This document shows positions 2,666 through 49,305 of a stretch of 64,000 nt of DNA, piece by piece. Positions within the stretch are counted from its first letter, which is position 1, and each line of letters opens with the position of its first letter. Source of the DNA: Rhodosorus marinus CCMP1338. Taxonomy: Eukaryota > Plantae > Rhodophyta. The translations under genes were made by a program, and so were the position numbers. The notes under the pieces are model-generated. The model was not told the DNA's origin. It did no database searches and worked only from the letters and a program-made list of their open reading frames with translations. The stretch lies in contig JAMWBK010000001.1 in NCBI GenBank assembly GCA_029953675.1, positions 496,001 through 560,000 on the forward strand. The letters are read 5' to 3'.

Positions 2666-4332
2666 ATGGACTCGATGTACTCGGCTCACCGGGTGAACTA
2701 CCAGCTTCGCGCGCACAGGCGGGACAGCTTGATAGAGTTTATTAAGACCTTGTTGCTGCCTACGATGGTGATGTACGCTAAAGGTGAGAGGAAGATACGG
2801 TTTGAACAGTATCTTGGGGTTTTTAGGAGTCTCGAGCAACTGGTGGATGAGCATCGAGAGCGGTACGAGCTGTTTATTGGGAAGGCCCAACAAGGAGTCT
2901 TCAGTTCAAAGTTACGGGATCTGGTCCCTGAGGTGTGTTCGTGTTAATATTGCATGTTAACATCAAAGGCGTTTGTTTAAGAAGAGGTGCAATCGAGGCG
3001 GAACGTTGTCCTGGACTTACCGAGGAATCCCTTTGTTCTGCGGAAACTTCATTTACAGGTTGGTATTTTCTTTACGCCCTTGCCTTTGACCATAGCGTTC
3101 TCAATATACGACGAGCAAGAAGCTATAACTGCGAGAAATTTCATTCCACCGAGCTTCAATGATATTCGTCACGTGCTTAACATTGCACAACTTTACGCGC
3201 TGAGGAAAACTGTGAAGCTCATAACTTTCGACGGTGCGAGCTATCAGAAGCTGCTGCTAGTCTCAAATCAACCTTGCTCTGAGATTGTCTATGGGCCATC
3301 GCGCAGGTGACCAAACGTTGTATCAAGACGGAGGAGATTTCCTTCCGGACAGCGCCCTGGTAGTGCACTTAATCAGCCTCCTCGAGAAGGGGGTGTTTGT
3401 TGCATTGGTTACAGCTGCGGGCTATGAGAACAACCCCAGAAAGTATGAGTCCAGGCTTTCTGGACTTTTAGCAGGCTTCAAGGCCCACAATCTGTCGGAA
3501 GTCGCAGCATCAAAGTTCTTTGTGCTGGTAAGCTGTAGAAGCACCTGCTTATGCTTTTGAGTTGATCAGCCGGCTCACGCGCGAGACCTTTCCCCTTCTA
3601 TCCCTAGGGCGGCGAATGCAACTTCCTGTACAAGTGCAAGGCGGACTACCAGCTGGAGGTTGTCAGGTTCGAGAGTTTCGCCACGGACGAGATGCTTCTG
3701 TGGGGGTCGGATCAGATAGTGAAAGTACTGGATATTGCTGAAGCGAGTTTGAGGAACGGTGTTGAAGAGATGAACCTGAGCTATCAAGTGCTTCGAAAGG
3801 CAAGAGGTGTAGGACTTGTATGCAAAGGTCGATCGGCCGGTAAGCTTCACAGAGGAAGGTTGTGTTCCCGTGCACCGGTCTAAAACGTCTAAAACGCTAA
3901 CCTTGACTTAACCTGACTCCTGGAAATAATGTGAGTGCAGACCGAGAGCAGTTGGATGAGCTAGCGCTCAGGGCCAAGCACGACGTGAACGAAGCACACC
4001 TGAATATTCGGGTATGCGCATTCAACGGGGGACAGGACGTGTGGGTTGATATTGGAGACAAACTGGTCGGTGTACAGGCACTTCAGGGCTTTCTTCAGGT
4101 AACGTAGCACAATAGACTCACTAGATTCCGTGAAGTCTCTCTCAATTGAGCCATGCATTTCAACGTCAAGTGCAAGCCAGAAGAAACCCTCCACGTTGGT
4201 GATCAGTTCCTGTCGACTGGTAACGATATCGCTACTCGACGAGCGTGCTGCACGGTTTGGGTTAGCAACCCAGAGGAGACCGACAAAGTACTGAGTCTGC
4301 TTGAGGAGCTTTCAAATCTGGAAGGAGAATGA
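2666..4332 (+). CDS. ISN1: IMP-specific 5'-nucleotidase (ISN1 family, HAD-like), multi-exon
   Basis: N-terminus MDSMYSAHRVNYQLRAHRRDSLIEFIK; spliced LVPE|VGIFFTPLPL; PPSFNDIRHVLNIAQ; HAD motif TFDG|DQTLYQDG split by an intron; DVWVDIGDKLVGV; C-terminal TLHVGDQFLSTGND..TRRACCTVWVSNPEET; stop at 4330-4332. Confidence 0.93.
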
Positions 4333-4540: not shown

Positions 4541-5728
4541 TTAAGGTAACCCAGCCTCAACATCAGCGGCGGTTAGTCCGTGCTGGTTTCTCATATGCCG
4601 GAAGTAGTTAGTCCTCCATACAAACTTCACTCCACACTGTTTACACTCCAAACTCTCCCGTTTCGTATGAACGTTCTTGGTATGAGCGACGAGATGTGAC
4701 CTCTGGCCAAACTTTGTCCCGCAGAGATCGCAAGCGTGTTTCTTCTCTCTGAAGTGTACCCCACTCAGATGTCGGTTCAGGTGCGACTGCGATCGGAACG
4801 CCGACCCGCAAATTTCGCAATCAAACCTCTTCTGTCGATCAACCCCAGCGCGGTTTCCCGCGTTAGCATGCCTTTGTTGTTTCAAATCTGGGCTAGACAA
4901 GACATCATTCTCTCTACTGGTAGTAGTTGTAACCGAGCTCAACGATTTATCATCCTTTTCATTGAAGAGCAGAGTCTTCCAGCTTTCAAACGTCGACATA
5001 ATATGCTGTACTCTTGGTGTCACAGCATCGGATGATGACAGCGTGTAAGCTCGTATTCTTGACTTGTCGGGGAAAATTACCCATGCGGGCCCCCGTCGGT
5101 TCTCTATCGCAGCTATCCCCGCGTGCCACGCATCCGGAAGTTCAACAGGTAAGCTCGCTTGGATAAGTCGGTCTCGTTCCTTTAACCTCGTATCGCATTC
5201 ACACGAATCCCCTCTCACAATACAGAAGGAGCAGTCTCGATCAATTATCAACCGTTGTTGGATTCTAAAAACTTTACACCCACTCCCCGCGTAGCCAACA
5301 ATAACTCCAACCCGGTTGAACGCTTCCCTTCTGAAGCTAACCGACGCCCGCAGCATCACCCCACCGTCCTCCATTTGCACCGCAATCAAACACACACTCG
5401 TCGTCCGCTCCTCGTTTATCGCAAAGATTACCCTGTCCTTCAACATTCGCGAGTCCTCAAACTTCAACATGTGCCCAAACGCTACATTTCCCTTCTGATG
5501 AGACAGTACATTCAAGCTCTTCCGGAAAAACAGCGTCTCACGAACACCAGCCTGCGGCCCCGGCTCCACCTTCATGAAATCGAAAGGAACCACATGTGAC
5601 GGCGACGGCAGCTTAAACGAGTCTTTATTATTCCCACCCAGCAGCCATTCCCCCACCGCCACATCATTGAGCATCTCCCTCATCAGCTCATAGTCCTCTC
5701 CATATTCCAGCCCCTCAATAATCATCAT
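4541..5728 (-). CDS. Intronless protein with 3 C-terminal C2H2 zinc fingers and an uncharacterised N-terminal domain (paralog 1)
   Basis: Open ORF with ATG at 5728 and three fingers: CEIC..HLSGVH, CDLC..HTKNVH, CKQC..HMRNQH. Confidence 0.9.
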   Translation of the reverse strand: MMIIEGLEYGEDYELMREMLNDVAVGEWLLGGNNKDSFKLPSPSHVVPFDFMKVEPGPQAGVRETLFFRKSLNVLSHQKGNVAFGHMLKFEDSRMLKDRVIFAINEERTTSVCLIAVQMEDGGVMLRASVSFRREAFNRVGVIVGYAGSGCKVFRIQQRLIIDRDCSFCIVRGDSCECDTRLKERDRLIQASLPVELPDAWHAGIAAIENRRGPAWVIFPDKSRIRAYTLSSSDAVTPRVQHIMSTFESWKTLLFNEKDDKSLSSVTTTTSRENDVLSSPDLKQQRHANAGNRAGVDRQKRFDCEICGSAFRSQSHLNRHLSGVHFREKKHACDLCGTKFGQRSHLVAHTKNVHTKRESLECKQCGVKFVWRTNYFRHMRNQHGLTAADVEAGLP

Positions 5729-5875
5729 GCTCAACCCCTCAACAAGTGCGCAAATTCATAGATGAAGAAAATGCCCTTTCACAACCTTCGCTCATTCATG
5801 CATATGTACACATCATCCCAGCAGCAAAAAACAAAGCCCCGTTCCCCTCCCTCCTGGGTAGTCTTCACCACTTGG

Positions 5876-7176
5876 CAACCGCAACTTTCAACTTTTCCAA
5901 GGCACGAACGCGTATACGCACATTTACGAGTCGCAATCCAGGAACGCCTCTACGGATGGCACAAGTTTTGGTTCCTTCTATGTATACAAAGCTCAAAACT
6001 TCTCACCTCAAACCACCAAAACCGGGAGAAAAACCTTCGCCCTTCCTCCAAACGCGCTCCTTCCAATACCAACTCAACTACCTCACGCCGTCAGAATGCC
6101 TCCACATAAATCAGAGCACCAACAGAACAATATCGGTTTGCTCGAATCCACTCTTTTAGGCTTCCACTAGTGTTCCTTGTAAAAGAATAAGCCAAGCGTA
6201 GCCTTGTCACCTTCCTGCCTCCCCCCCCCAAATACCGCTTCTCACCCAAATACTAACCAAACAATGAGCCAAAGAAACGATAAACGAGCAGATAGAGATT
6301 AAGCTCTCCTCTTCATGTTTCACTCACCAAATCTTAAAAGCTCTGCCCTTCCTCCTCAGTGAGCGACTAGAAGCCAAGTTTAGCCTCGTAGAAACCAGAC
6401 TAACGTTAACCCCCCTCCCTCTTCCCCCTCCCACCACTCTCACTTCCTTGTTCTCCTCCAAATACTTCCAAACAATTTGCAAAAGAAATGAGCATAAAGT
6501 AGATGGAGATTATGCTCTCCTCCTCATGTCCCAATCACAGACTCCAAAAGCTCCGCCCTTCCACTGCGGTGAGTGCTCGAATGAACGAGGCAGCTTCTTC
6601 GTACTGTTGGCGGATTTGTGGTTTTCTGGAGAAAGCTATCGAGGTTCTACGACGTTGAGAAGGAGAGGCCACGAGCGTATACACCAACCGCAAGCGAAGC
6701 GAATACTCATTGACACTTTGTGCTACCAACGAATTGCCCCTCCATAAAGGGCAGTTCACCATAGAGGCCCTCTTTCGAGGACGAACAACGGTGAGAAGGG
6801 AAAGCTACACTCGACGTAAGGAACTACCCCAAGAATCAGGGGGCTGAACTCGAAAAAGAACAGGGCCGAACTGAGAGCATATTGGAAGCGTTACCAAAGA
6901 TCAAGCTGAAACCACCGGCACTGACGTAAGCAGCGCGGTTCCATCTGTTTGAAGTATTGTTAGCATTCTTGACTGCGGGACAAAGTCGGGTTGATAGTCA
7001 ACAAAGCATTCGTCAGCTTTGGTGGGTTGAAGGGGGGGGGGGCGGAATACTGTTGAGGTTTTGTCCGCATAAAAGGAAATACAGCCTTGTGCAGCCAATG
7101 ATGCGTTTCTGAACTGCGACTCGTATATGTGCGTATACACGTGTACGCGGCTTGAAAAAGTTGAAAGTTACTGTTG
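5876..7176. repeat. ~125-bp degenerate inverted repeat pair (5876-6000 / 7051-7176) enclosing a ~125-bp direct repeat (6247-6372 / 6459-6582)
   Basis: caaccgcaactttcaacttttccaaggcacgaacgcgtatacgcacatttacgagtcgca aligns with the reverse complement of 7051-7176 (caacagtaactttcaactttttcaagccgcgtacacgtgtatacgcacatatacgagtcgca). The inner repeat is agat(a/g)gagatta.gctctcctc.tcatgt...aaaagctc.gcccttcc. Confidence 0.8.
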
Positions 7177-7760
7177 ACCACGCAGGGAATCTGAGGAAAC
7201 GCTCCACCCTCCCGCCTAGGCCTTTACTTCCATTCAGAACAGCTCGTCAACACTGCTCAATGTCAAACTTCTTATGGAAACGACAAAGGTAAAGAAAAAA
7301 AAAGCAAAAATCAAAAACTAGTTTCGGGTGTGTTCTTATTGTCTATTTTTGGTAAGCCTTCTATAAAATTAGAAAACAACATGTTAATGGTAGTGACGGG
7401 CGGTTTGGGAGTCGCACGTCTTGAAAGAGTACGCCTTTTTTTTTCTGCCTTTCTAACGTAACCCCAAAAGTAAAAGATTTTCAGAAAGGAAAGTTTTTAA
7501 TGAAAATGGGGAAATCTCGTCTGTGTGCAATAATATCAAATGGGGACTTGTTTGTTGGTATACAGACCGTTTACTTCAGCTACCGAGAGTACCTGTAGCC
7601 TTTACTGGGTAGCTGCTCGTGTAATGCAGCGCACCACGGCGCGAAGTTAAGCGATTTCCGGTTTGTCTTTCTAAAAACAACAACAAACTTGTTCTTGCTC
7701 AGGATAGTTGGACTCTGAGTAAACCAAGATTTCCTAGCAAATGCCTGCCAGCGAAGCTCT

Positions 7761-8500
7761 TCACCAAAACACTTGTTCTTCGACGAGCATCATATCAGCG
7801 CCTTCGATTATTCTTCTTAGGCTTGTTAGCCTCGGACTCATCGCTTTCTCATAAAGCGCCTGCGGGTGAAGCTTTGACCAAAACAGTTCGCCTTGGAAGC
7901 CGATGTCACTTAGGCCTAAGGCTACTTCGGTGGCAGGAAACACTCAATGCAGTGTTTCGACAGAACCTCGACAGGTATCGCGAGGATTGATGCTATCGAA
8001 ACGTTGTGGTGGTTGTGGTTGAATCGAATAAACGCAGTTGATAAATGCGCTTGTCATGCACTTGGTGAAAGGGATGACGAGGAAGCGAACGCACAAATTC
8101 AAGGAGCAGTATAAGCTCCTCGTAGGAGTCAAGCTGGGCCTTCGCTGTGGCATTTTCGTCAGCCGACACGTCATAATTCATCATGTGAGGGGCAGGTCAT
8201 GAGGAGCTAAATACATTTATGTTTAAGTAAAGTTTATTGCTGGTTTGTATTTTATTTCCAGCTGTTTTCCGAATTCGGAAAAGCTTACAATGTATGGAGG
8301 CGGAAGCTGAATTTTGATGGGTCTACGAGCAGCGAACTGCTCGCATATGTGATCCATTTGTTAACAATAACCACGCCGAATCGGCATTGTGTCTTCTCGT
8401 TACTTCCGACGGTGCAAGATGAGCGTAGGTGTGCAGTAGCCTCGGTGAAAGGACATGCAGACTGTAACAAGGCTAGGTGCAACGCCTTGTTGCGCCTCTA
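7761..8500 (-). mobile_element. Decayed hAT-family transposase (C-terminal part including dimerisation domain)
   Basis: Collinear interrupted motifs: LLQSACPFTEATAHLRSS (cf. L.PF..AT..LS), SSSLLVDPSKF (cf. A.LLDPRFK), AKAQLDSY, FR*HQSSRYLSRFCRNTALSV then frameshift FPATEVA (cf. W...YP.LS..AR..LS.PATS.A), MSPRLTSL..IIE..MML. Contains stops and frameshifts. Confidence 0.55.
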
Positions 8501-8698
8501 CCTTCCAAGATCAGGTTCTACAGGGCCTCGAGTATGACTTTGAAGTAGCCGAACCTGGCTACTGGGTCTCCAACATTCTACTGGCGATATTTTGATCACG
8601 TATCTGATCGTTTCGGGTGGCTTCTCCACCGATACGTGTGTTTAAGTTACAAAATTAGAATTAGTATTCGGGACAAAGAATCAAGACGCTTGCGCTAT

Positions 8699-9847
8699 TC
8701 ACTCAATCGGCAGATCGGTTTCTCCGTGCTGGTTTCTCATGTGCCTGAAGTAGTTGGTCCGCCACCTAAACTTGACCCCGCAGTAGTTACACGCTAATTT
8801 CTCCCGCTTCCCATGAACAATCTTGATGTGGGCGACTAGATGCGAGCGCTGACCAAACTTGGTCCGACAGAGATCGCAAACGTGCTTCTTCTCTCTGAAG
8901 TGTACCCCACTCAGATGTCGGTGAAGGTGCGCCTGCGATCGGAACGCCGACCCGCAAATTTCGCATTCAAATCTCTTTCGTTCAGTCACAACCACCTGTT
9001 TCTGATCAGGGGAGTCCGAATCAGTTCTAGGAAAGTTTTCACTACTCGTAATACTGCTTAACGTTCTGTCATCATTTTCATTGAAGAGCAGAGCCTTCCA
9101 GCTTTCAAACGTCGACATAATTTGTTGCACTCTTGGTGTCACAGCATCGGAGGATGACAGCGTGTAAGCTCGTATTCTTGACTTGTCGGGGAAAATTACC
9201 CATGCGGGCCCCCGTCGGTTCTCTATCGCAGCTATCCCCGCGTGCCACGCATCCGGAAGTTCAACAGGTAAGCTCGCTTGGATAAGTCGGTCTCGTTCCT
9301 TTAACCTCGTATCGCATTCACACGAATCCCCTCTCAAAATACAGAAGGAGCAGTCTCGATCAATTATCAACCGTTGTTGGATTCCAAAAACTTCACACCC
9401 ACTCCCCGCGTAACCAACAATAACTCCAACCCGGTTGAACGCTTCCCTTCTGAAGCTAACCGACGCCCGCAGCATCACCCCACCGTCCTCCATTTGCACC
9501 GCAATCAAACACACACTCGTCGTCCGCTCCTCGTTTATCGCAAAGATTACCCTGTCCTTCAACATTCGCGAGTCCTCAAACTTCAACATGTGCCCAAACG
9601 CTACATTTCCCTTCTGATGAGACAGTACATTCAAGCTCTTCCGGAAAAACAGCGTCTCACGAACACCAGCCTGCGGCCCCGGCTCCACCTTCATGAAATC
9701 GAAAGGAACCACATGTGACGGCGACGGCAGCTTAAACGAGTCTTTATTATTCCCACCCAGCAGCCATTCCCCCACCGCCACATCATTGAGCATCTCCCTC
9801 ATCAGCTCATAGTCCTCTCCATATTCCAGCCCCTCAATAATCATCAT
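8699..9847 (-). CDS. Intronless C2H2 zinc-finger protein with uncharacterised N-terminal domain (paralog 2)
   Basis: Open ORF. The N-terminal ~255 aa are nearly identical to paralog 1, followed by three C2H2 fingers. Confidence 0.9.
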   Translation of the reverse strand: MMIIEGLEYGEDYELMREMLNDVAVGEWLLGGNNKDSFKLPSPSHVVPFDFMKVEPGPQAGVRETLFFRKSLNVLSHQKGNVAFGHMLKFEDSRMLKDRVIFAINEERTTSVCLIAVQMEDGGVMLRASVSFRREAFNRVGVIVGYAGSGCEVFGIQQRLIIDRDCSFCILRGDSCECDTRLKERDRLIQASLPVELPDAWHAGIAAIENRRGPAWVIFPDKSRIRAYTLSSSDAVTPRVQQIMSTFESWKALLFNENDDRTLSSITSSENFPRTDSDSPDQKQVVVTERKRFECEICGSAFRSQAHLHRHLSGVHFREKKHVCDLCRTKFGQRSHLVAHIKIVHGKREKLACNYCGVKFRWRTNYFRHMRNQHGETDLPIE

Positions 9848-12169
9848 GCTCAACCCCTCAACAAGTGCGCCAATTCATAGATGAAGAAAATGCCCTTTCA
9901 CAACCTTCGCTCATTCATGCATATGTACACACCATCCCAGCAGCAAAAATCAAAGCCCCGTTCCTCCCTCATGGGTGGTCTTCACTAATCTCCAATCCTC
10001 CCGCCCCAAATGCTCTGCTCTACTTCTGTCCTTTAGTGGTTCTTGAACCACCAAAAAACGAAATCCTACTAATAACTAAACTAAATTTCTACCGAAATAC
10101 TATGAACTCACACCAACACAAACTGCGCTGCAATCTCCCCGCCTTTCCACCCTTCCAAAACTCCCACCCGCTTCAGATCTCTTCTCATCCGCCCGGACTC
10201 GAATTCTGGGATGTTGTTTTCTTGAGAAAGACGTTCGCAATGCGTTGATTCACAATAAAGGGTCTTACGTCCGCTCTTGACAGCAAAAACGCCCATTCAG
10301 TACGTCCTAAAAAATTTCAGAATCTGCGCCCAGAAAAGTTTTATTATAAAACATATATTATTCTAATATACCACGCGCGTTGAAAACGTGGCAAAGTACT
10401 CCGTTTCACCAATTTCACGCTTGGGTTCAATTTGAAAGTGACCTTTTTATTACATTATTCATCATTTGTGCAATTTTTCACGATGTTCACCCACCCCTAA
10501 CCGTCGAAGCTTTTGGTTTGGGGTGGGGGTAGAAGGGTTGCTGACATTGGCCTAGTGATAAGTGGAGGGTTGGATCCTTCTCTACACTGAGAAGCGGATT
10601 GGGAACTGATCAGTTTAGGTGCGCGGTTTAGTGGCTTTTTGTTTGAGAATGGAGATGGAAAGGATCACATTACAGCGGGGTCGGGCGATAGCTGATAAGG
10701 ATCTCGTGAACCGGGGGATGTCCATCGGTGTAGAATTCCTTCTGGGGGAAGTCTGCACGGGCCTTAACTGCGAGTTGGGGAGAGGTCGCGATCGTCTGAG
10801 GGGCAAATTGTCTTAAGGCTGGAGTAGTTGATTGTTTTTTTTTGGGGGGGGGGGGTGGGAAGAAGGGGGAAGGCTGAAATATATTATTGACTTCTTTGTA
10901 GAGCTAGTGCTCTAGAATAGTTGCAACAGCCCTACGTGCACATATTCCCCAGTGCAGGCGAGGGATCGGTGAGTTCTAATCTTGAATTCCAAGGTGGTGC
11001 CAACAAAACCCAAGCTCGTCTCTACGCTGATGAATATCATTTCATGCTTTTCAAAGCGCGGGCACGTTGAAGAAAACATCCAACAAGCGAGGACAAAGTT
11101 TGATCTCCGCTCCTTGGTACTACTTCGTACTTTTTCAAAACGTTTCCTTCCTATTTAACATTGTATATACCGTCACCAAACATCCTACACATCAAATAGG
11201 TCAACTTGTCGGCGTAGAAAAGTTGGACATGGTTCCAGGTCCACCTGTCTACGTCTGATCTGTACCCCCTGCTGTGAAGAATACAACATCGAGCACATCC
11301 GAGTTTGCTTTTCTCAAAAATCGCAGTTTTAATCGGATGATGCGTTCTTCCTGCTCCCGCTTGTGTCATTCCCCTTGAAGCGACCAGTCACCCAACCTCG
11401 GCACAAGAGACTTCTACAGCCCACTCACATCACTGGCTTCCGAATCATCCCGGAAGTGTAATCGCATCCACCAACCTCTAGATCCTCATGTTCTTCTATT
11501 TCTCCGTCAATCCACCACCAGCTCCTCACACTACACCATAACGGCGATTGCCCCAAAAACCTCTGCTCTTTCGGTCAAGATGATTTGCAGTCAAGTGACA
11601 CCGTTCCAGAATTAACCTAACAACTCCACATGACCCAACAGGAACAGTTTTTTTTAGCCAATGATCCTCGATCCGCGCGCCCAAAATCCCAAGTGACATC
11701 CACAAAACGGTTTTCTCCACCCCCAAGAAGAGATTCGACACAAAAACGGTGCTTCTCCGCCAAGCGAGGATTAAACTAAAATTCCATATTATTAATAACG
11801 TTTTTATTTTTATTCTTATGAAAAGAAGAAACAATTGTAGAAAACCATTCCTTTTGCTTACAGTGTCCAATCATCCAATTATGTTTCCATCAAAAGCATC
11901 AAAGAAACAGACGAAAAGGATCCGGCGAACAGGACTCTTCTTAATCGGAGTAATTAGTTTTGAAAAACAGTGAAATCTATGGACAATCTAATTAGATTCT
12001 AATACGATAAAAAGATTGTGAATAGTTGAAGAAAAGTTATTGGTTTGAGGACTGGAAAGATTAGGCGAGGAATGCCCGTGCTGCTTTCGTTTGATTTGGG
12101 AGCCGGAAGCAAAGCGGAAATTGTTGAGCACGCACCCCATCTGGCCGGCAGGCTTGTCAGAGTGACCGT

Positions 12170-12342
12170 CGAAATACAAGAGTTTGAGTGATTTTGTGTG
12201 CCTGTTCGTTTGCTGAGTTGCATTCGGATGCAAAACAACTTGCAGTCCAGCGGCGCGATCCGAAATACAAGAGTTTGAGGGATTTTGTGTGTCCCGTTCG
12301 TTTGCTGAGTTTGCATCCGGTGGCAACTTGCTAGTCCAGGGG
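12170..12342. repeat. Two-copy tandem repeat, period ~91 bp
   Basis: cgaaatacaagagtttgag(t/g)gattttgtgtg..gttcgtttgctgagtt starts at 12170 and at 12261. Confidence 0.85.
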
Positions 12343-12687
12343 CTCGTGCAAGAATGTGCCCCTAATTTTCCAGCGCTATTCAACAAATCGGAGGAAAACT
12401 GAGCTTGCGCGGCCGGCCGGAGCGGTAAATGTGACTTCAAAGCATCAAGCAAATAGTGTTTTGCGACGTCAAGAGGGTTTCCGGGAACCGTTGCGAATAT
12501 GATTCCATGCAGGAGGGCACGATGCAATCGTTCACCGCTTCGCGAGGCCAGTCACCATGCTTTCCTGGAGATCCGAGTTGCCGAGTACCTTTGGGCATGA
12601 ATTTAGGCTATCGGCTATCGCTTATAACCCTCAGTTTAATTTTCACAAAGTTATTAAATACAAGACACTCTCAAGACTGGCCATTGT

Positions 12688-13833
12688 TCACTCAACCGGT
12701 ACTCCGGCGTCCGCGTGCTGTCTTCTAATATGCCGGAGATAGTTAGTTCGCCATCCAAACTTAGCGCCGCAATATGTACACTCCAGTTTTTCGCACTTCC
12801 CATGGACGTTGTTGACATGAACAAGGAGATGTGACCTCTGCCCAAATTTACTCCCGCAGAATTCACAGATGTGTGTTTTTTCTCTCAAGTGAACGCCCGC
12901 CTTGTGCCTCTTCAAATGGGAAGAGGATCGAAACGATGACCCGCAAACGTCGCACTCAAATCTTTTCGGTTTCCGTGATTTGTAGAGTGTCACAACCGAG
13001 TCCGAGTCAGCTCTTGGGACAAGTTCAAGACTGGGCACAGAGCTTGATGACCTATCGTCCGACTCTTTGAACAAAAGCCTCTTCCAACTGTCAAGCAAAG
13101 ATATAATATGCTGTACTCTGGGCGTGACCACATCCGAAGTTGAACTAGTGTGAGCTCGTATTTTGGAGCCATCAGGAAACACCACCCAGGCAGGACCTCG
13201 TAGACTCCTTATGAAGGCACTGCCGACATTCCATGCAGTCCCGAGTTCATCCGATAAGGTTTGCTGGACGAACCTGCAGCGCTCCTTCAGACTTCCATCG
13301 CAGTCACAAGGTTCAGCTCTCACCATGCAAAAGGAACAGTCCCGATCAATTGTGAACCGCTGTTGAATATGGAAGCACGTCGAACCACTGCTCGCGTAAG
13401 TCACTAACACTGTGACTTTGTTGAACGCAAGCGTCCTCGTGGAAAAGGACGCTCGCAGCATGACACCACCATCTTCACATCGAACTGCAATCAAGCAAAC
13501 AGATGTCATCCGCACCTCATCAACAGCGAAGATCAGTCGATCGTTTAGCATCCGCGAGTTTTCAAACTTCAACACGTTCGCAAACGCCACGTTTCCGATG
13601 TGATGAGACAGCACCTTCAAGCTCTTCCTGAAATACAACGTTTCACGAATTGTGGCCTGTGGTCCGGGATCCACCTTCATGAAATCAAAAGGGAGGATGT
13701 TTCTCGCATCCACCGGCAGCTTAAACAAATCCTCGTTGGTTCCGCCAAAAAGCCAGTCCTGGACATCGATATTGTTCAACATCTCTCGCATCAGCTCGTA
13801 CTCCTTTCCATGTTCAAGGTCCACGACAATCAT
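12688..13833 (-). CDS. Intronless C2H2 zinc-finger protein with uncharacterised N-terminal domain (paralog 3, more diverged)
   Basis: ORF from ATG 13833 (MIVVDLEHGKEYELMREMLN...), collinear with paralogs 1 and 2 along its whole length, with three C2H2 fingers. Confidence 0.9.
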   Translation of the reverse strand: MIVVDLEHGKEYELMREMLNNIDVQDWLFGGTNEDLFKLPVDARNILPFDFMKVDPGPQATIRETLYFRKSLKVLSHHIGNVAFANVLKFENSRMLNDRLIFAVDEVRMTSVCLIAVRCEDGGVMLRASFSTRTLAFNKVTVLVTYASSGSTCFHIQQRFTIDRDCSFCMVRAEPCDCDGSLKERCRFVQQTLSDELGTAWNVGSAFIRSLRGPAWVVFPDGSKIRAHTSSTSDVVTPRVQHIISLLDSWKRLLFKESDDRSSSSVPSLELVPRADSDSVVTLYKSRKPKRFECDVCGSSFRSSSHLKRHKAGVHLREKTHICEFCGSKFGQRSHLLVHVNNVHGKCEKLECTYCGAKFGWRTNYLRHIRRQHADAGVPVE

Positions 13834-15358
13834 TCTAGATCCCCCCCCAAACACCCCAGCACTTTAGAAACAAAAAGCTAACAGCCCACCGAACAAAAAG
13901 ACCTCTCCCACCTCAAGAAAACGTCAAGAAACACGAGGAGGATTCATAGCTGAAGTGGAGCCCACTCCCGTCGCCTCACTTATCTCAACATTCCCATCTA
14001 TCTTATACTTGTCAACCTAAGCGCACACAGAAAAAAATAAACCAAAAGTGAACCTGTAAAAATGCCTCCTCACAAAGCGCGTCCCTCCACCAAACAACAC
14101 TGCCCTAACAACCCCCTCAACCACACCCTCCCAACAAAAGTCCGAATTCCTTTCGGAGAGACGACTATCGACATCCCATCAATCTGTTCGAAAATCCGAC
14201 CAACACCATCCGAGCTACAAACACGCCACCCCAGAAGCGGCGGAAAAAGAGTTCCCCCCAACAAACCATCCCTCGTCCTCCTTCGCGAAAGTATCAGTTT
14301 TTCTCCTTCATGAGCGAGGATTTTTCGCCCAACTTCTTCGTACAAAAAAGAATTTAAAAACAAAAACAAACAGAATCATTCTGCCCTGAAACCAGATGTT
14401 TCCTTTCACGACAGGTGTGACTGTGTCGGTTTAGCACCGATTTTTTCCGCTCCCTGACCCAAACTATTTTTAAAAAAACAATATCACACCATCCAAAACA
14501 AAAACAAAAAATTTGATGTAAAAAAAGACGGCAGGAAAAGAAAAGCGTTTTCCAAAACCGAAAAAAAATTCGGGGTGGCAAGGAGGCCATTAAGAAGTGA
14601 TCGGCAAAAAAAAACTTGCCCTTCAGATAAATCGGTGTAATTTATTTATTTTCTCTCCCAAAGAAAATGAAAATTTTCCGGAAATCCTCAATCACCAATA
14701 ACCCCAAAAAAGGATTATTTAGACGAACACGTCAGAATTTTCTCCGTCGTCTACTCCTAAACGGAATCCGTATTCTGTATATACTAAATATTTAAGAAGA
14801 TTACATCGGCAACGCAGGATCCTAGTTAAGGGATATACATCCAAAAATTGCTGAATTGAAATATTTATCGAAAAACATTTATTCAGGCGAGCGGCGAATA
14901 GCTCTTGCACCGAAAAATGATTGATTCGTTTTTTGGATTGAATAGGATTTTGTTGGCATGTCAGCCTCTTGGGTTTGAGGGATCGTCGAAGTGGCGAGAG
15001 CAGGAGGCGGCTGACGGTCATCATGATGGAGGTTCTTTCCTGATTAGGTTATGTCTTGCCAGTAGCGAAGAAGCTGAGCTTTCGCTTCTTTCTTTCTACT
15101 GCAATTGTTGTTCCGATTTCCGTTTTCCTCTTTGCTTTCGGGCAACATCGTTTGCAAGTTTGTTGCTGCGTCAGGTTCTTTCACCCAGTTGATGTTGAGA
15201 CCACGAGAGGATCGTTGGAGCGGGACCAGGTGACGGAACTCGTTTTGGTTGACGTCGCTCGCGAGGTAGTCCTGGATGAGGTTAACGGTGATTGGAGTTT
15301 CGAAAGTTGTACCCGGTACGATCGACGCTGTTGCTGGTTAGGCTAGTTGGATATCGGC

Positions 15359-17121
15359 ATGACCTCAGAAGCAGATGCAGATCTTCCGAAAGGTCGAGGT
15401 ACCTCGCAGAAAGGGTACCAAACTCGCACAGAAAGGCACATGCTCTCAAACACCGGGGATAGGAAGGTGCGTTGAATATTTTTTTCCCCCTTCGCATCCC
15501 GATGTGCTCATCCGAGCTAACGTGAGTGTTTATCATCCTAATTCAGACGCTCACCGCCTCTGAAGCGCGTTCCAGACTATCTCCAGATGAGATTGTTCAG
15601 GTCACGTTCCTTCTCAGAATGAGAAGCGATCGTGGCTTGTCAGAGGTAGAGGCACAGGAGCTGAAGGAGATTAGCTTCAAGGTTCTAACGGACAGAGATC
15701 CGGCTGAACTGCTGGAAGATGCGTGCAAGCCCGAGAGCAGTGCTGGTGAGCACCGGATGGTATGATCTTCGAGACGTGGCTGGTTGCACGCGTCCATTTG
15801 CTGACATCTGTTTTGACCAATTTCCTAGCATCTGGATGCACTGGGAATATCGGAGGAGGAACTAACGGAGCTCAAAAGAGTTAAGAAGAGTAGCCAGATG
15901 GGATCAGTAACCAGGCGGGAGCTCCTGCACATCGAACTTTGCAAGCAGAAGCTCATCGATCATTGCTTCACTGAAAACTGGAAGTTTATCAAGCAACTAT
16001 TCGACTTCGAAGAGACCACCATGGTACCAAAGCACCTCGGGGTAAGGTCGCTCGACACATCGAGGTCGGCAGGTCTAGGAGATGGTTGCTGATGGATTCA
16101 TGCCCGTCCCTTATTTGCAGGTGCACGGAACTGAGATTGCTGTTCCAGAAATATGTCTTGCTGAATATGGGAAAGACTTTGCCTCCGACGTGTTTAACAT
16201 AATCTACAACGGAATTTTGAGAGAAGCTATAGACCTCTACGCAATTCTCGCCAGCTTGAAGAGAAGAACTGTTCTAGTTGATCCTGAGGATGTACGAACT
16301 GACCGCGGCGGGCTTAACGACTCGCATGCACATAACTGAAGCCATGCTCTCCGTCGTTTGTCGTTTACAGGTCCATGCGGTCTTTTCGTGGTGGATCGAT
16401 TTTCGCATCTTTGTAATCAAATCTTTTGAAGTTGAAGACCAGTTCATCTTGCCCTGGGTGACAAGGAGAGTGAACGTCAGCAAGACAGTGATGCAGCAAA
16501 CATGCCGGAACCTACGAAGATCTAGAATAGCTTTCAAATTGCTTAAGGTGCGGACTGCTCAATTCCACTGGACACAGAATGTTCCACACAATGCGAATGC
16601 GATTCGTGCGTTTCGTTGCTGAGCAGCCATTGCCGCTCAGGTGTCCAATACAGAGGAGTTTGAGGGACGAATGCATCCCGGAGAGGTGATCAACAGATTC
16701 CACTCAGCTTGGGAGAACGTTTTTCTCGATTTGAAAAGTTATTTTCAAGACACTCACCGTATTCTGGTGCCCATGGTCGCCCGTGCGTACCAAGCAACCG
16801 ACAAAACGAAACTGGAAAAGGAGATTTTCAATTATTTGAAAGGCAGCGACGAAGCGGATTTGGTATATGCTTTCAATCAGTGCAACTGGATCTCTTCGCA
16901 AGACTGACACGTTCGCAACTCCCTCGTCACAGGTTGCGGGGCTCTGGGTAAGATGGATGACCTCTGCTCAGAGGAAATCTTACCGGAAAGGTTTGGTTGG
17001 CAATATCTTCAACCTGAGGGCTTCTCAGGATTTTAAGAACCTCGAAGCTAAGTTCTCGCATAGGGAACATATACGTATCCCTGAAATGATTATCAAAAAG
17101 GAAGCGTTGCTTGAGGACTAG
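15359..17121 (+). CDS. Multi-exon hypothetical protein with degenerate hemerythrin-like helical segments
   Basis: Coding-like exons are joined by GT-AG introns (GDRK|TLTASEAR..., VHGTEIAVPE..., VHAVFSWWIDF..., VSNTEEF..., VAGLWVRW...EALLED*). The patterns YNGILREAIDLY and SFEVEDQFILPW resemble the HHE motifs H.AIRREL and HH..EE..LFP. Confidence 0.6.
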
Positions 17122-26656: not shown

Positions 26657-26764
26657 CGAAATGACAAACTGGCTTGCGGCGCCGGGAAGGAGCTGGCATT
26701 CCTGGAAGCACGAAATGACAAACTGCCATGCGGCGCAGAGAAGGAGCTGGCATTGCTGGAAGCC
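26657..26764. repeat. Two-copy 54-bp tandem repeat
   Basis: cgaaatgacaaactg(gct/cca)tgcggcgc(cgg/aga)gaaggagctggcatt(c/g)ctggaagc starts at 26657 and at 26711. Confidence 0.9.
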
Positions 26765-49086: not shown

Positions 49087-49305
49087 GACCCCAGGGCCGA
49101 ACCCGTGCGGAACACACAAACACCCCTCAAACACGCACAGATGAGCAGCAAAAGCGACCAACCATGAAGTTCATAACCGACTTTAGGAGCCAGGCCATAA
49201 ATGAAGAAATACCAAAAAAAAAGACCCCCCCCCCATGCCGAACCCGGCCGGACACACAAACATCCCAAAAAGCATCCACGGATGAGCAGCAAAATTCGCA
49301 TCGAC
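49087..49305. repeat. Two-copy degenerate tandem repeat, period ~135 bp
   Basis: gacccc..gccgaacccg..cgga.cacacaaaca.ccc..aaa...c.c..gatgagcagcaaaa occurs at ~49087 and ~49222. Confidence 0.75.

Follow-up and report, generated by a model that had tools for sequence, protein, structure and literature searches.

An undescribed N-terminal domain on a five-gene family of C2H2 zinc-finger proteins in the red alga Rhodosorus marinus

The presence of lineage-specific accessory domains on zinc-finger proteins is a well-known pattern. In the ZAD-C2H2 proteins of insects (zf-AD, PF07776) a linker connects a lineage-restricted N-terminal domain with four cysteines to a C2H2 array at the C-terminus, the genes often lying in tandem clusters, and the Rhodosorus marinus proteins described here share that layout. 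The ZAD contains a metal site and acts as a dimerisation module, and by analogy a dimerisation role would be favoured for the Rhodosorus N-terminal domain. Yet the two are clearly distinct. The ZAD comprises ~75–90 aa with the pattern C-x2-C...C-x2-C, whereas the Rhodosorus domain is ~255 aa in length, is predicted to be beta-rich and carries C-x2-C-x6-C-x-C; ZAD genes number dozens to hundreds, compared with five in Rhodosorus, and zf-AD gives no Pfam match in the paralogs. The KRAB-, SCAN- and BTB/POZ-C2H2 proteins of vertebrates similarly place an N-terminal interaction or effector domain before C-terminal fingers and have expanded in tandem. The Rhodosorus proteins differ from these in having three fingers each, with contact residues that are conserved rather than diversifying, and in lacking an association with transposons. 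The KRAB box (PF01352) is absent from the paralogs at both E<=1 and E<=10, and neither SCAN (PF02023) nor BTB/POZ (PF00651) gives a Pfam match at the N-terminus.

If the N-terminal domain were to bind a ligand, a further parallel would be the plant HD-ZIP III/IV factors, in which a homeodomain is fused to the START domain, a lipid or small-ligand sensor. Those factors use another DNA-binding domain and arrange their domains in another order, and neither sequence nor fold searches linked the Rhodosorus domain to START or Bet v 1. C2H2 proteins are the most abundant class of transcription factors in mesophilic red algae (PMC12567131). What distinguishes the present family from generic red-algal C2H2 factors is the extra ~255-aa domain, absent from every other protein of the collections searched. 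The reading that we favour, and consider probable, is that the genes studied here belong to a five-gene, Rhodosorus-restricted family of C2H2 transcription factors in which this domain is the regulatory half.

The locus and the gene family

The window is a stretch of 64,000 nucleotides of contig JAMWBK010000001.1 (assembly GCA_029953675.1). Between positions 4541 and 13833 its minus strand encodes three intron-free paralogs of 395, 382 and 381 aa, in each of which a variable linker joins the ~255-aa N-terminal domain to three classical C2H2 fingers. A bacterial ORF caller places the reading frames at 4541-5734, 8699-9853 and 12688-13854 on the minus strand, with TTG or GTG starts that belong to the caller; the real ATG starts lie at 5728, 9847 and 13833, and match the deposited gene models (395, 382 and 381 aa). 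The features are as follows.

4541..5728, minus strand: copy 1, complete CDS, 395 aa (ATG at 5728, stop TAA at 4541-4543); transcript contig L003 is collinear
4964..5728, minus strand: copy 1, N-terminal orphan domain, residues 1-255; without Pfam or PDB match, omega 0.14 versus copy 3
5195..5242, minus strand: copy 1, Cys cluster DRDCSFCIVRGDSCEC, residues 163-178; invariant positions in 8 family sequences
4826..4963, minus strand: copy 1, variable linker, residues 256-301; basic immediately ahead of the fingers, 43% identity with copy 2 and 28% with copy 3
4580..4825, minus strand: copy 1, three-finger C2H2 array, C-x2-C-x12-H-x4-H with 7-residue inter-finger linkers
8699..9847, minus strand: copy 2, complete CDS, 382 aa; N-terminal domain 9083-9847, Cys cluster 9314-9361, linker 8972-9082, fingers 8726-8971
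12688..13833, minus strand: copy 3, complete CDS, 381 aa; N-terminal domain 13069-13833, Cys cluster 13300-13347, linker 12961-13068, fingers 12715-12960
4937..5868, minus strand: gene-conversion tract, copy 1 side; 97.7% identical to 9056-9985, and 100% over 5280-5725
9056..9985, minus strand: gene-conversion tract, copy 2 side; partner of 4937-5868

The initial annotation had described three same-strand, intronless tandem paralogs, and this is upheld by the ORFs, by the deposited models and by a transcript contig from another strain that runs collinear with window 5872-3807, confirming a coding region free of introns. Two segments downstream of copy 1 that are absent from transcript isoform L004 had the appearance of 3′UTR introns, but their GT...AG boundaries lie on the plus strand and assign them to the convergent ISN1 gene. 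The other two window copies share 89% and 61% whole-protein identity with copy 1, far above chance. The succession of a variable linker and three fingers is equally as first described, with linker identity of 28–47% among the copies and three Pfam-significant PF00096 units in each.

Copies 1 and 2 are mosaic in their divergence. Their dS is 0.023 in the N-terminal domain but reaches 0.58 for the fingers and 1.5 for the linker, and the homogenised tract spans the N-terminal domain plus ~140 bp upstream. Recent gene conversion has homogenised the N-terminal domain and proximal promoter of these two copies, while linkers and fingers stayed diverged. The mosaic is a neat illustration of concerted evolution acting domain by domain.

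How large is the family? It comprises five genes in two clusters, the window trio and a tandem pair (NDN08_007673/007674) on contig JAMWBK010000002.1, with housekeeping genes in the flanks. Their annotation goes no further than ‘C2H2-type domain-containing protein’ or ‘hypothetical protein’. The family is transcribed, since transcriptome proteins or contigs exist for three of its lineages: MMETSP proteins cover three, transcript contigs are collinear with copy 1, and transcripts were seen for copy-1-like, P0004-like and P0012-like genes. By exact look-up a contig was recovered for P0011 and none for P0002. Expression is thus established for three or more of the five gene lineages. Separate transcripts for copies 2 and 3 were not found among this evidence. 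The family is real, conserved and tandem-grown at two loci.

The N-terminal domain

All of the motifs quoted for the N-terminal domain in the initial annotation were found again, and the DRDCSFC-x6-CxCD motif is invariant in all three window copies. The view that the domain belongs to no named family has also stood. Even at E<=10 the N-terminal ~255 aa are not covered by any Pfam family, and a PDB search with sequence profiles gave no match at the same threshold. An exhaustive HMMER search of 1.84 billion representative proteins returned the Rhodosorus paralogs only, plus one spurious repeat protein, and a profile search of 5.8 billion clusters returned family members alone. A scan of metagenome contigs gave 268 pattern matches, none of which was confirmed. 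Two candidates were rejected: P0006, a repetitive bacterial protein of 2111 aa, matched the profile at E 5e-4 and proved on reading to be a low-complexity artefact, and DUF6603 (E 0.1–0.2, copies 1 and 2 only, far below cut-off) is noise. The domain was never found without fingers in the representative-protein and cluster searches. The proposal of a lineage-specific family is therefore borne out, with members in Rhodosorus marinus only across the protein, cluster and metagenome searches, although sparse genome coverage of the Stylonematophyceae could be part of the reason why the family seems confined to one genus. The domain is an undescribed, genus-restricted accessory domain on otherwise ordinary C2H2 transcription factors.

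Comparison of copies 1 and 3 gives dS 1.83, dN 0.26 and omega 0.14 for the N-terminal domain, which evolves under purifying selection and is conserved as a domain in its own right. The Cys cluster has the pattern D-x-D-C-x-F-C-x6-C-x-C, and D163, D165, C166, F168, C169, R172, C176 and C178 (copy 1 numbering) are invariant in all eight family sequences, though paralogs share only 31–33% identity. This putative zinc-knuckle-like C-x2-C-x6-C-x-C cluster probably stabilises the domain. AlphaFold modelling with an alignment of four sequences (A2) gave a mean pLDDT of just 33, while eight sequences (A4) yielded a moderate model of an antiparallel beta-meander (mean pLDDT 58, pTM 0.62). In the A4 model about eight long antiparallel strands succeed one another across residues 46–164, with a short strand and two helices before them and helices again after them; residues 167–196, the region of the Cys cluster, fall below pLDDT 50 and are its least confident part. 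The model suggests that the domain is a beta-rich globular module. When this moderate model was searched with Foldseek against the PDB and viral predicted structures, as had been proposed, no known fold was matched significantly.

Could the domain bind a small molecule? A beta-barrel or helix-grip fold, calycin/lipocalin-like or START/Bet v 1-like, would make the proteins one-component, ligand-regulated transcription factors, comparable to nuclear receptors or to the START-bearing HD-ZIP factors of plants. The run of long strands in the better model is consistent with this, and the weak Foldseek matches are nearly all to ligand-binding up-and-down barrels (lipocalins, anticalins, avidin, nitrobindin), together with a phage bilin lyase. 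However, these matches to calycin/SRPBCC-type folds (E 0.02–0.4, TM <=0.26 normalised to the query, for a model of mean pLDDT 58) include none that is significant, the best having E 0.023–0.037, and the model is mediocre; the resemblance to lipocalins or a bilin lyase was not accepted as an assignment. Moreover, the lipocalin, START, Bet v 1 and CpeT Pfam models match no paralog at E<=10, and a ligand pocket leaves the Cys cluster unexplained. We regard ligand binding of this kind as unlikely. Slightly less probable again is that the domain is a new fold, or a metal-, redox- or small-ligand-sensing module born within the Stylonematophyceae, such that the five proteins would be one-component sensor-regulators switched through the C-x2-C-x6-C-x-C site.

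Zinc fingers and spacers

Each window copy contains three PF00096 units (E 1e-10 to 1e-12, 39–45 bits against a cut-off of 25.2), with the exact pattern C-x2-C-x12-H-x4-H three times and the canonical inter-finger linker of seven residues from the last His to the next Cys. The best solved relatives are the DNA-binding arrays of ZNF568, PRDM9, CTCF, YY1 and TFIIIA (E down to 1.7e-29), and by sequence the three C-terminal fingers are of the classical DNA-reading type. Helix positions -1, 2, 3 and 6 are almost identical in the alignment of the five paralogs: S/T-x-H-R in finger 1, Q-S-H-A/V/L in finger 2 and W-T/A-N-R/K in finger 3. Finger-region identity among paralogs is only 44–50%, yet the contact residues are kept, and the omega of 0.18–0.20 shows that the fingers are under purifying selection. 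On the Zif268-type recognition code, which is the ground for inferring both DNA binding and shared specificity, all members would read much the same ~9-bp site.

C2H2 fingers can also bind RNA or proteins, in which case the family would not be one of transcription factors. The H-x4-H spacing of all three fingers and the unusual Trp at position -1 of finger 3 might be taken in that sense. Set against them are the canonical seven-residue linkers of the tandem array, the DNA-binding arrays that are the closest solved relatives, and a basic, apparently NLS-like stretch just ahead of the fingers in several paralogs. RNA or protein binding in place of DNA binding thus appears distinctly improbable.

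The initial annotation described the genes as interspersed with transposon debris, and this we could not confirm. Within the window no dispersed repeats fall in the spacers (5735-8698 and 9854-12687), the ten longest stop-to-stop spacer ORFs give no Pfam match, and no spacer sequence is common to the spacers of the second cluster. A single pair of imperfect inverted repeats, ~80 bp in length (5873-5950 / 7100-7180), is all that resembles a transposon there.

The parallel first drawn with KRAB, ZAD and SCAN families holds for the layout only and is not supported for the function. KRAB-ZFP-like proteins would be fast-evolving repressors that track transposable elements, the N-terminal domain recruiting silencing machinery. 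The N-terminal accessory domain, C-terminal array and tandem clusters are indeed similar, and copy 1 has the TIR-like inverted repeat pair immediately upstream. But the family numbers just five genes, with three fingers apiece; the contact residues are conserved despite the divergence around them, at the low omega given above; the spacers hold neither transposon-protein remnants nor dispersed repeats, and the flanks are housekeeping genes; and KRAB, SCAN, ZAD and BTB give no Pfam match. Such a role is very unlikely. The idea that the N-terminal domain is a captured transposase or mobile-element remnant fused to fingers, as a domesticated transposon gene, which a Cys-rich motif and intronless tandem genes, common in domesticated transposases, might bring to mind, is scarcely credible given that there is no transposase Pfam match, no homolog in other organisms among the 1.84 billion representatives (transposases being normally widespread and multicopy), a predicted all-beta meander rather than an RNase-H-like alpha/beta fold, and a domain always found together with the fingers.

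A probable lineage-specific regulatory family

We return to the reading of the five proteins as a Rhodosorus-restricted transcription-factor family with its own regulatory domain. Here the finger triplet would recognise a ~9-bp DNA site, much alike in all members, and the Cys cluster would hold the beta-rich N-terminal domain together in the manner of a zinc knuckle. That domain would be the regulatory half, most likely a protein-interaction surface through which paralogs self- or cross-associate or a cofactor is recruited. Tandem duplication at two loci enlarged the family, and recent gene conversion evened out the N-terminal domains and proximal promoters of copies 1 and 2.

The suggestion that the locus encodes an undescribed system stands in part. 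The N-terminal domain is undescribed, but the genes that carry it form a transcription-factor family of an ordinary, lineage-specific sort. Lineage-specific accessory domains are already well known from zinc-finger proteins, so no new kind of system is revealed. To our knowledge almost no red-algal C2H2 factor has a known partner domain or function. The N-terminal domain thereby offers a concrete handle on gene regulation in red algae, and could enter the domain databases.

Gene structure and transcription of the paralogs

The initial annotation proposed three intronless paralogs on the same strand, and three minus-strand ORFs are present, each in agreement with the contig's recorded gene model:

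4541-5734, minus strand: copy 1, true ATG at 5728, 395 aa
8699-9853, minus strand: copy 2, true ATG at 9847, 382 aa
12688-13854, minus strand: copy 3, true ATG at 13833, 381 aa

The TTG and GTG starts at the outer ORF ends are the product of a bacterial ORF caller, and are not true starts. At the protein level copies 2 and 3 share 89 and 61% identity with copy 1, respectively. All the motifs quoted in the annotation are found, including the invariant DRDCSFC-x6-CxCD, and Pfam confirms three significant C2H2 fingers per copy (PF00096, E 1e-10 to 1e-12).

Window positions 5872-3807 are matched collinearly, at 88.6% nucleotide identity, by a transcript contig of 2.2 kb from a different strain, and thus the coding sequence of copy 1 is transcribed and free of introns. 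MMETSP transcriptome proteins are known for three lineages, like copy 1, P0004 and P0012 (the latter two being further R. marinus family members), and at least these lineages are therefore expressed. Downstream of copy 1 lies a convergent gene:

2666-4332, plus strand: ISN1 (IMP 5′-nucleotidase), stop codon 209 bp from that of copy 1

Two segments (about 3840-3940 and 4099-4170) are absent from the transcript isoform L004 but retained in L003. Their GT...AG borders read on the plus strand, which makes them ISN1 introns, spliced in L004. L003 and L004 are unstranded merges of the two convergent mRNAs, and therefore do not define the 3′UTR of copy 1. The MMETSP proteins P0002 and P0011 share ~88.6% DNA and 90% protein identity with copy 1 of the genome strain, so that strains under the name Rhodosorus marinus are quite divergent. 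At several positions of the N-terminal domain (N-domain) the MMETSP ortholog has the residue of copy 3, unlike copies 1 and 2.

The N-terminal domain

The first ~255 residues could not be assigned to a named family by eye, and this stands: Pfam gives no match there even at E<=10, and profile searches of the N-domain against PDB sequences return none. Between copies 1 and 3 dS is 1.83, near saturation, while dN is 0.26 (omega 0.14); on this sequence evidence the region is a real domain. It is constrained at least as tightly as the fingers (omega 0.18-0.20), with the linker much freer. Across paralogs sharing only 31-33% identity in this region 46 columns are invariant, including a dense block VPFDF..[ED].GP...RET..FR.S..V.SH and the motif D-x-D-C-x-F-C-x2-R-x3-C-x-C-x3-L-K-x-R. 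The four cysteines of the latter are the only invariant cysteines of the domain, and the cluster presumably resembles a retroviral-type zinc knuckle in size (13 residues) and spacing.

AlphaFold failed with a four-sequence alignment (mean pLDDT 33); with eight sequences it gave a moderate model (mean pLDDT 58, pTM 0.62). A short strand and two helices precede some eight long strands in antiparallel order, spanning residues 46-164 (pLDDT 65-80 in their core). The Cys cluster falls in a low-confidence region (residues 167-196), beyond which are more helices and two short strands. Foldseek with this model, the check suggested at the outset, finds no match at E<=0.001 in the PDB and a viral library. 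The best matches (E 0.02-0.4, query-normalised TM <=0.26) are weak and of a generic up-and-down beta type, comprising lipocalins, avidin, porins, nitrobindin and a phage bilin lyase. These would suit a ligand-sensing barrel or helix-grip domain, a function that we regard as rather unlikely, and we take a calycin-like or helix-grip ligand-binding fold as no more than a lead. That the domain is a domesticated transposase remnant is scarcely credible.

Predicted DNA contacts, spacers and gene conversion

The fingers follow C-x2-C-x12-H-x4-H throughout, with inter-finger linkers of seven residues. Their best solved relatives are the DNA-binding arrays of ZNF568, PRDM9, CTCF, YY1 and TFIIIA, which makes RNA or protein an improbable target. 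The contact residues (helix positions -1, 2, 3 and 6) were taken from the paralog alignment:

Finger 1: copy 1 S,S,H,R; copy 2 S,A,H,R; copy 3 S,S,H,R; P0012 S,Y,H,R; P0004 T,Y,H,R
Finger 2: copy 1 Q,S,H,A; copy 2 Q,S,H,A; copy 3 Q,S,H,V; P0012 Q,S,H,L; P0004 Q,S,H,V
Finger 3: copy 1 W,T,N,R; copy 2 W,T,N,R; copy 3 W,T,N,R; P0012 W,T,N,K; P0004 W,A,N,K

Finger modules of the two gene clusters are only 44-50% identical, yet the contacts are almost fixed. Under the Zif268-type recognition code the five proteins are predicted to recognise nearly one and the same ~9-bp site.

Near-fixed contacts run counter to the KRAB type, whose arrays diversify, and a KRAB-like, transposon-tracking family is very improbable. 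Nor is the 'transposon debris' of the initial annotation evident: the spacers between copies have no dispersed repeats within the 64-kb window, none of their ten longest ORFs matches Pfam, and no sequence common to them and the spacers of the second cluster was found. The sole transposon-like feature, without a second copy in the window, is an imperfect inverted repeat:

5873-5950 and 7100-7180: inverted repeat pair, ~80 bp, 82% identity, enclosing the ~1.3 kb immediately 5′ of copy 1

It sets in at the very position where the copy 1 locus ceases to match copy 2 and the 5′ end of the transcript; the latter goes on matching sequence upstream of copy 2. The pair may mark a MITE-like insertion, bounded by TIRs, in the promoter of copy 1. 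The spacer of copies 2 and 3 holds a tandem duplication (12170-12254 and 12261-12343, ~85 bp, 85% identity); other small tandem repeats of the window are at 459-586, 26657-26763 and 49089-49294.

Positions 4937-5868 (copy 1) and 9056-9985 (copy 2) are 97.7% identical, and 100% over ~450 bp inside, while the finger regions are 84% identical and the linkers hardly alignable. Between these copies dS rises from 0.023 in the N-domain to 0.58 in the fingers and ~1.5 in the linker. So large a jump is beyond the reach of protein-level selection and indicates recent gene conversion, over a tract spanning the N-domain and ~140 bp upstream and ending near the N-domain/linker boundary.

Distribution and relation to known families

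Database relatives of the N-domain are confined to Rhodosorus marinus. Among 1.84 billion representative proteins, searched exhaustively with an HMMER profile, only copy 3 itself and the more distant paralogs P0004 and P0005 (E ~1e-32) matched, along with a repetitive bacterial protein that was judged spurious. A wider profile search, of 5.8 billion clusters, contributed P0012 but no protein from outside the genus, and a metagenome contig scan gave no confirmed match. P0004 and P0012 correspond to neighbours on JAMWBK010000002.1 (L001), on the same strand and 3.5 kb apart:

L001:6536-7675: NDN08_007674 (P0012)
L001:10001-11140: NDN08_007673 (P0004)

Thus the genome-wide count is five genes in two tandem clusters. 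The N-domains of this pair are 46% identical, and either is ~32% identical to the window copies. Every member has the layout of N-domain, linker and three fingers, and among family sequences the N-domain was never found without fingers. Both clusters lie among ordinary genes: PDS5, a 430-aa unknown, ISN1, a peroxiredoxin and a G-patch protein in the window, and a La/RRM protein, a tetraspanin, a GT28 glycosyltransferase and a GDP-mannose pyrophosphorylase-like gene at the second. The 430-aa protein gene (15359-17121, plus strand), between copy 3 and PDS5, has no Pfam match on record.

The parallel drawn with KRAB, ZAD and SCAN families holds for the general layout, which BTB-C2H2 proteins also share; ZAD is the closest analogy, having a lineage-specific N-terminal module with four cysteines. 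It fails in that the contacts are not diversifying and transposon association is unsupported. The defining domains of ZAD, KRAB, SCAN and BTB are absent (Pfam, to E<=10), and therefore the family belongs to none of these.

We favour, with moderate confidence, sequence-specific DNA-binding regulators whose three fingers would target a motif common to the family. The N-domain would be a beta-rich regulatory module stabilised by zinc, probably serving as a protein-interaction surface. A literature search found no description of it and a single general survey, in which C2H2 factors dominate red-algal transcription factor repertoires (PMC12567131). Since the Stylonematophyceae are poorly sampled, the genus-only range may become class-only with more genomes. 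As it stands, the family consists of otherwise ordinary C2H2 factors that carry an undescribed accessory domain restricted to one genus.
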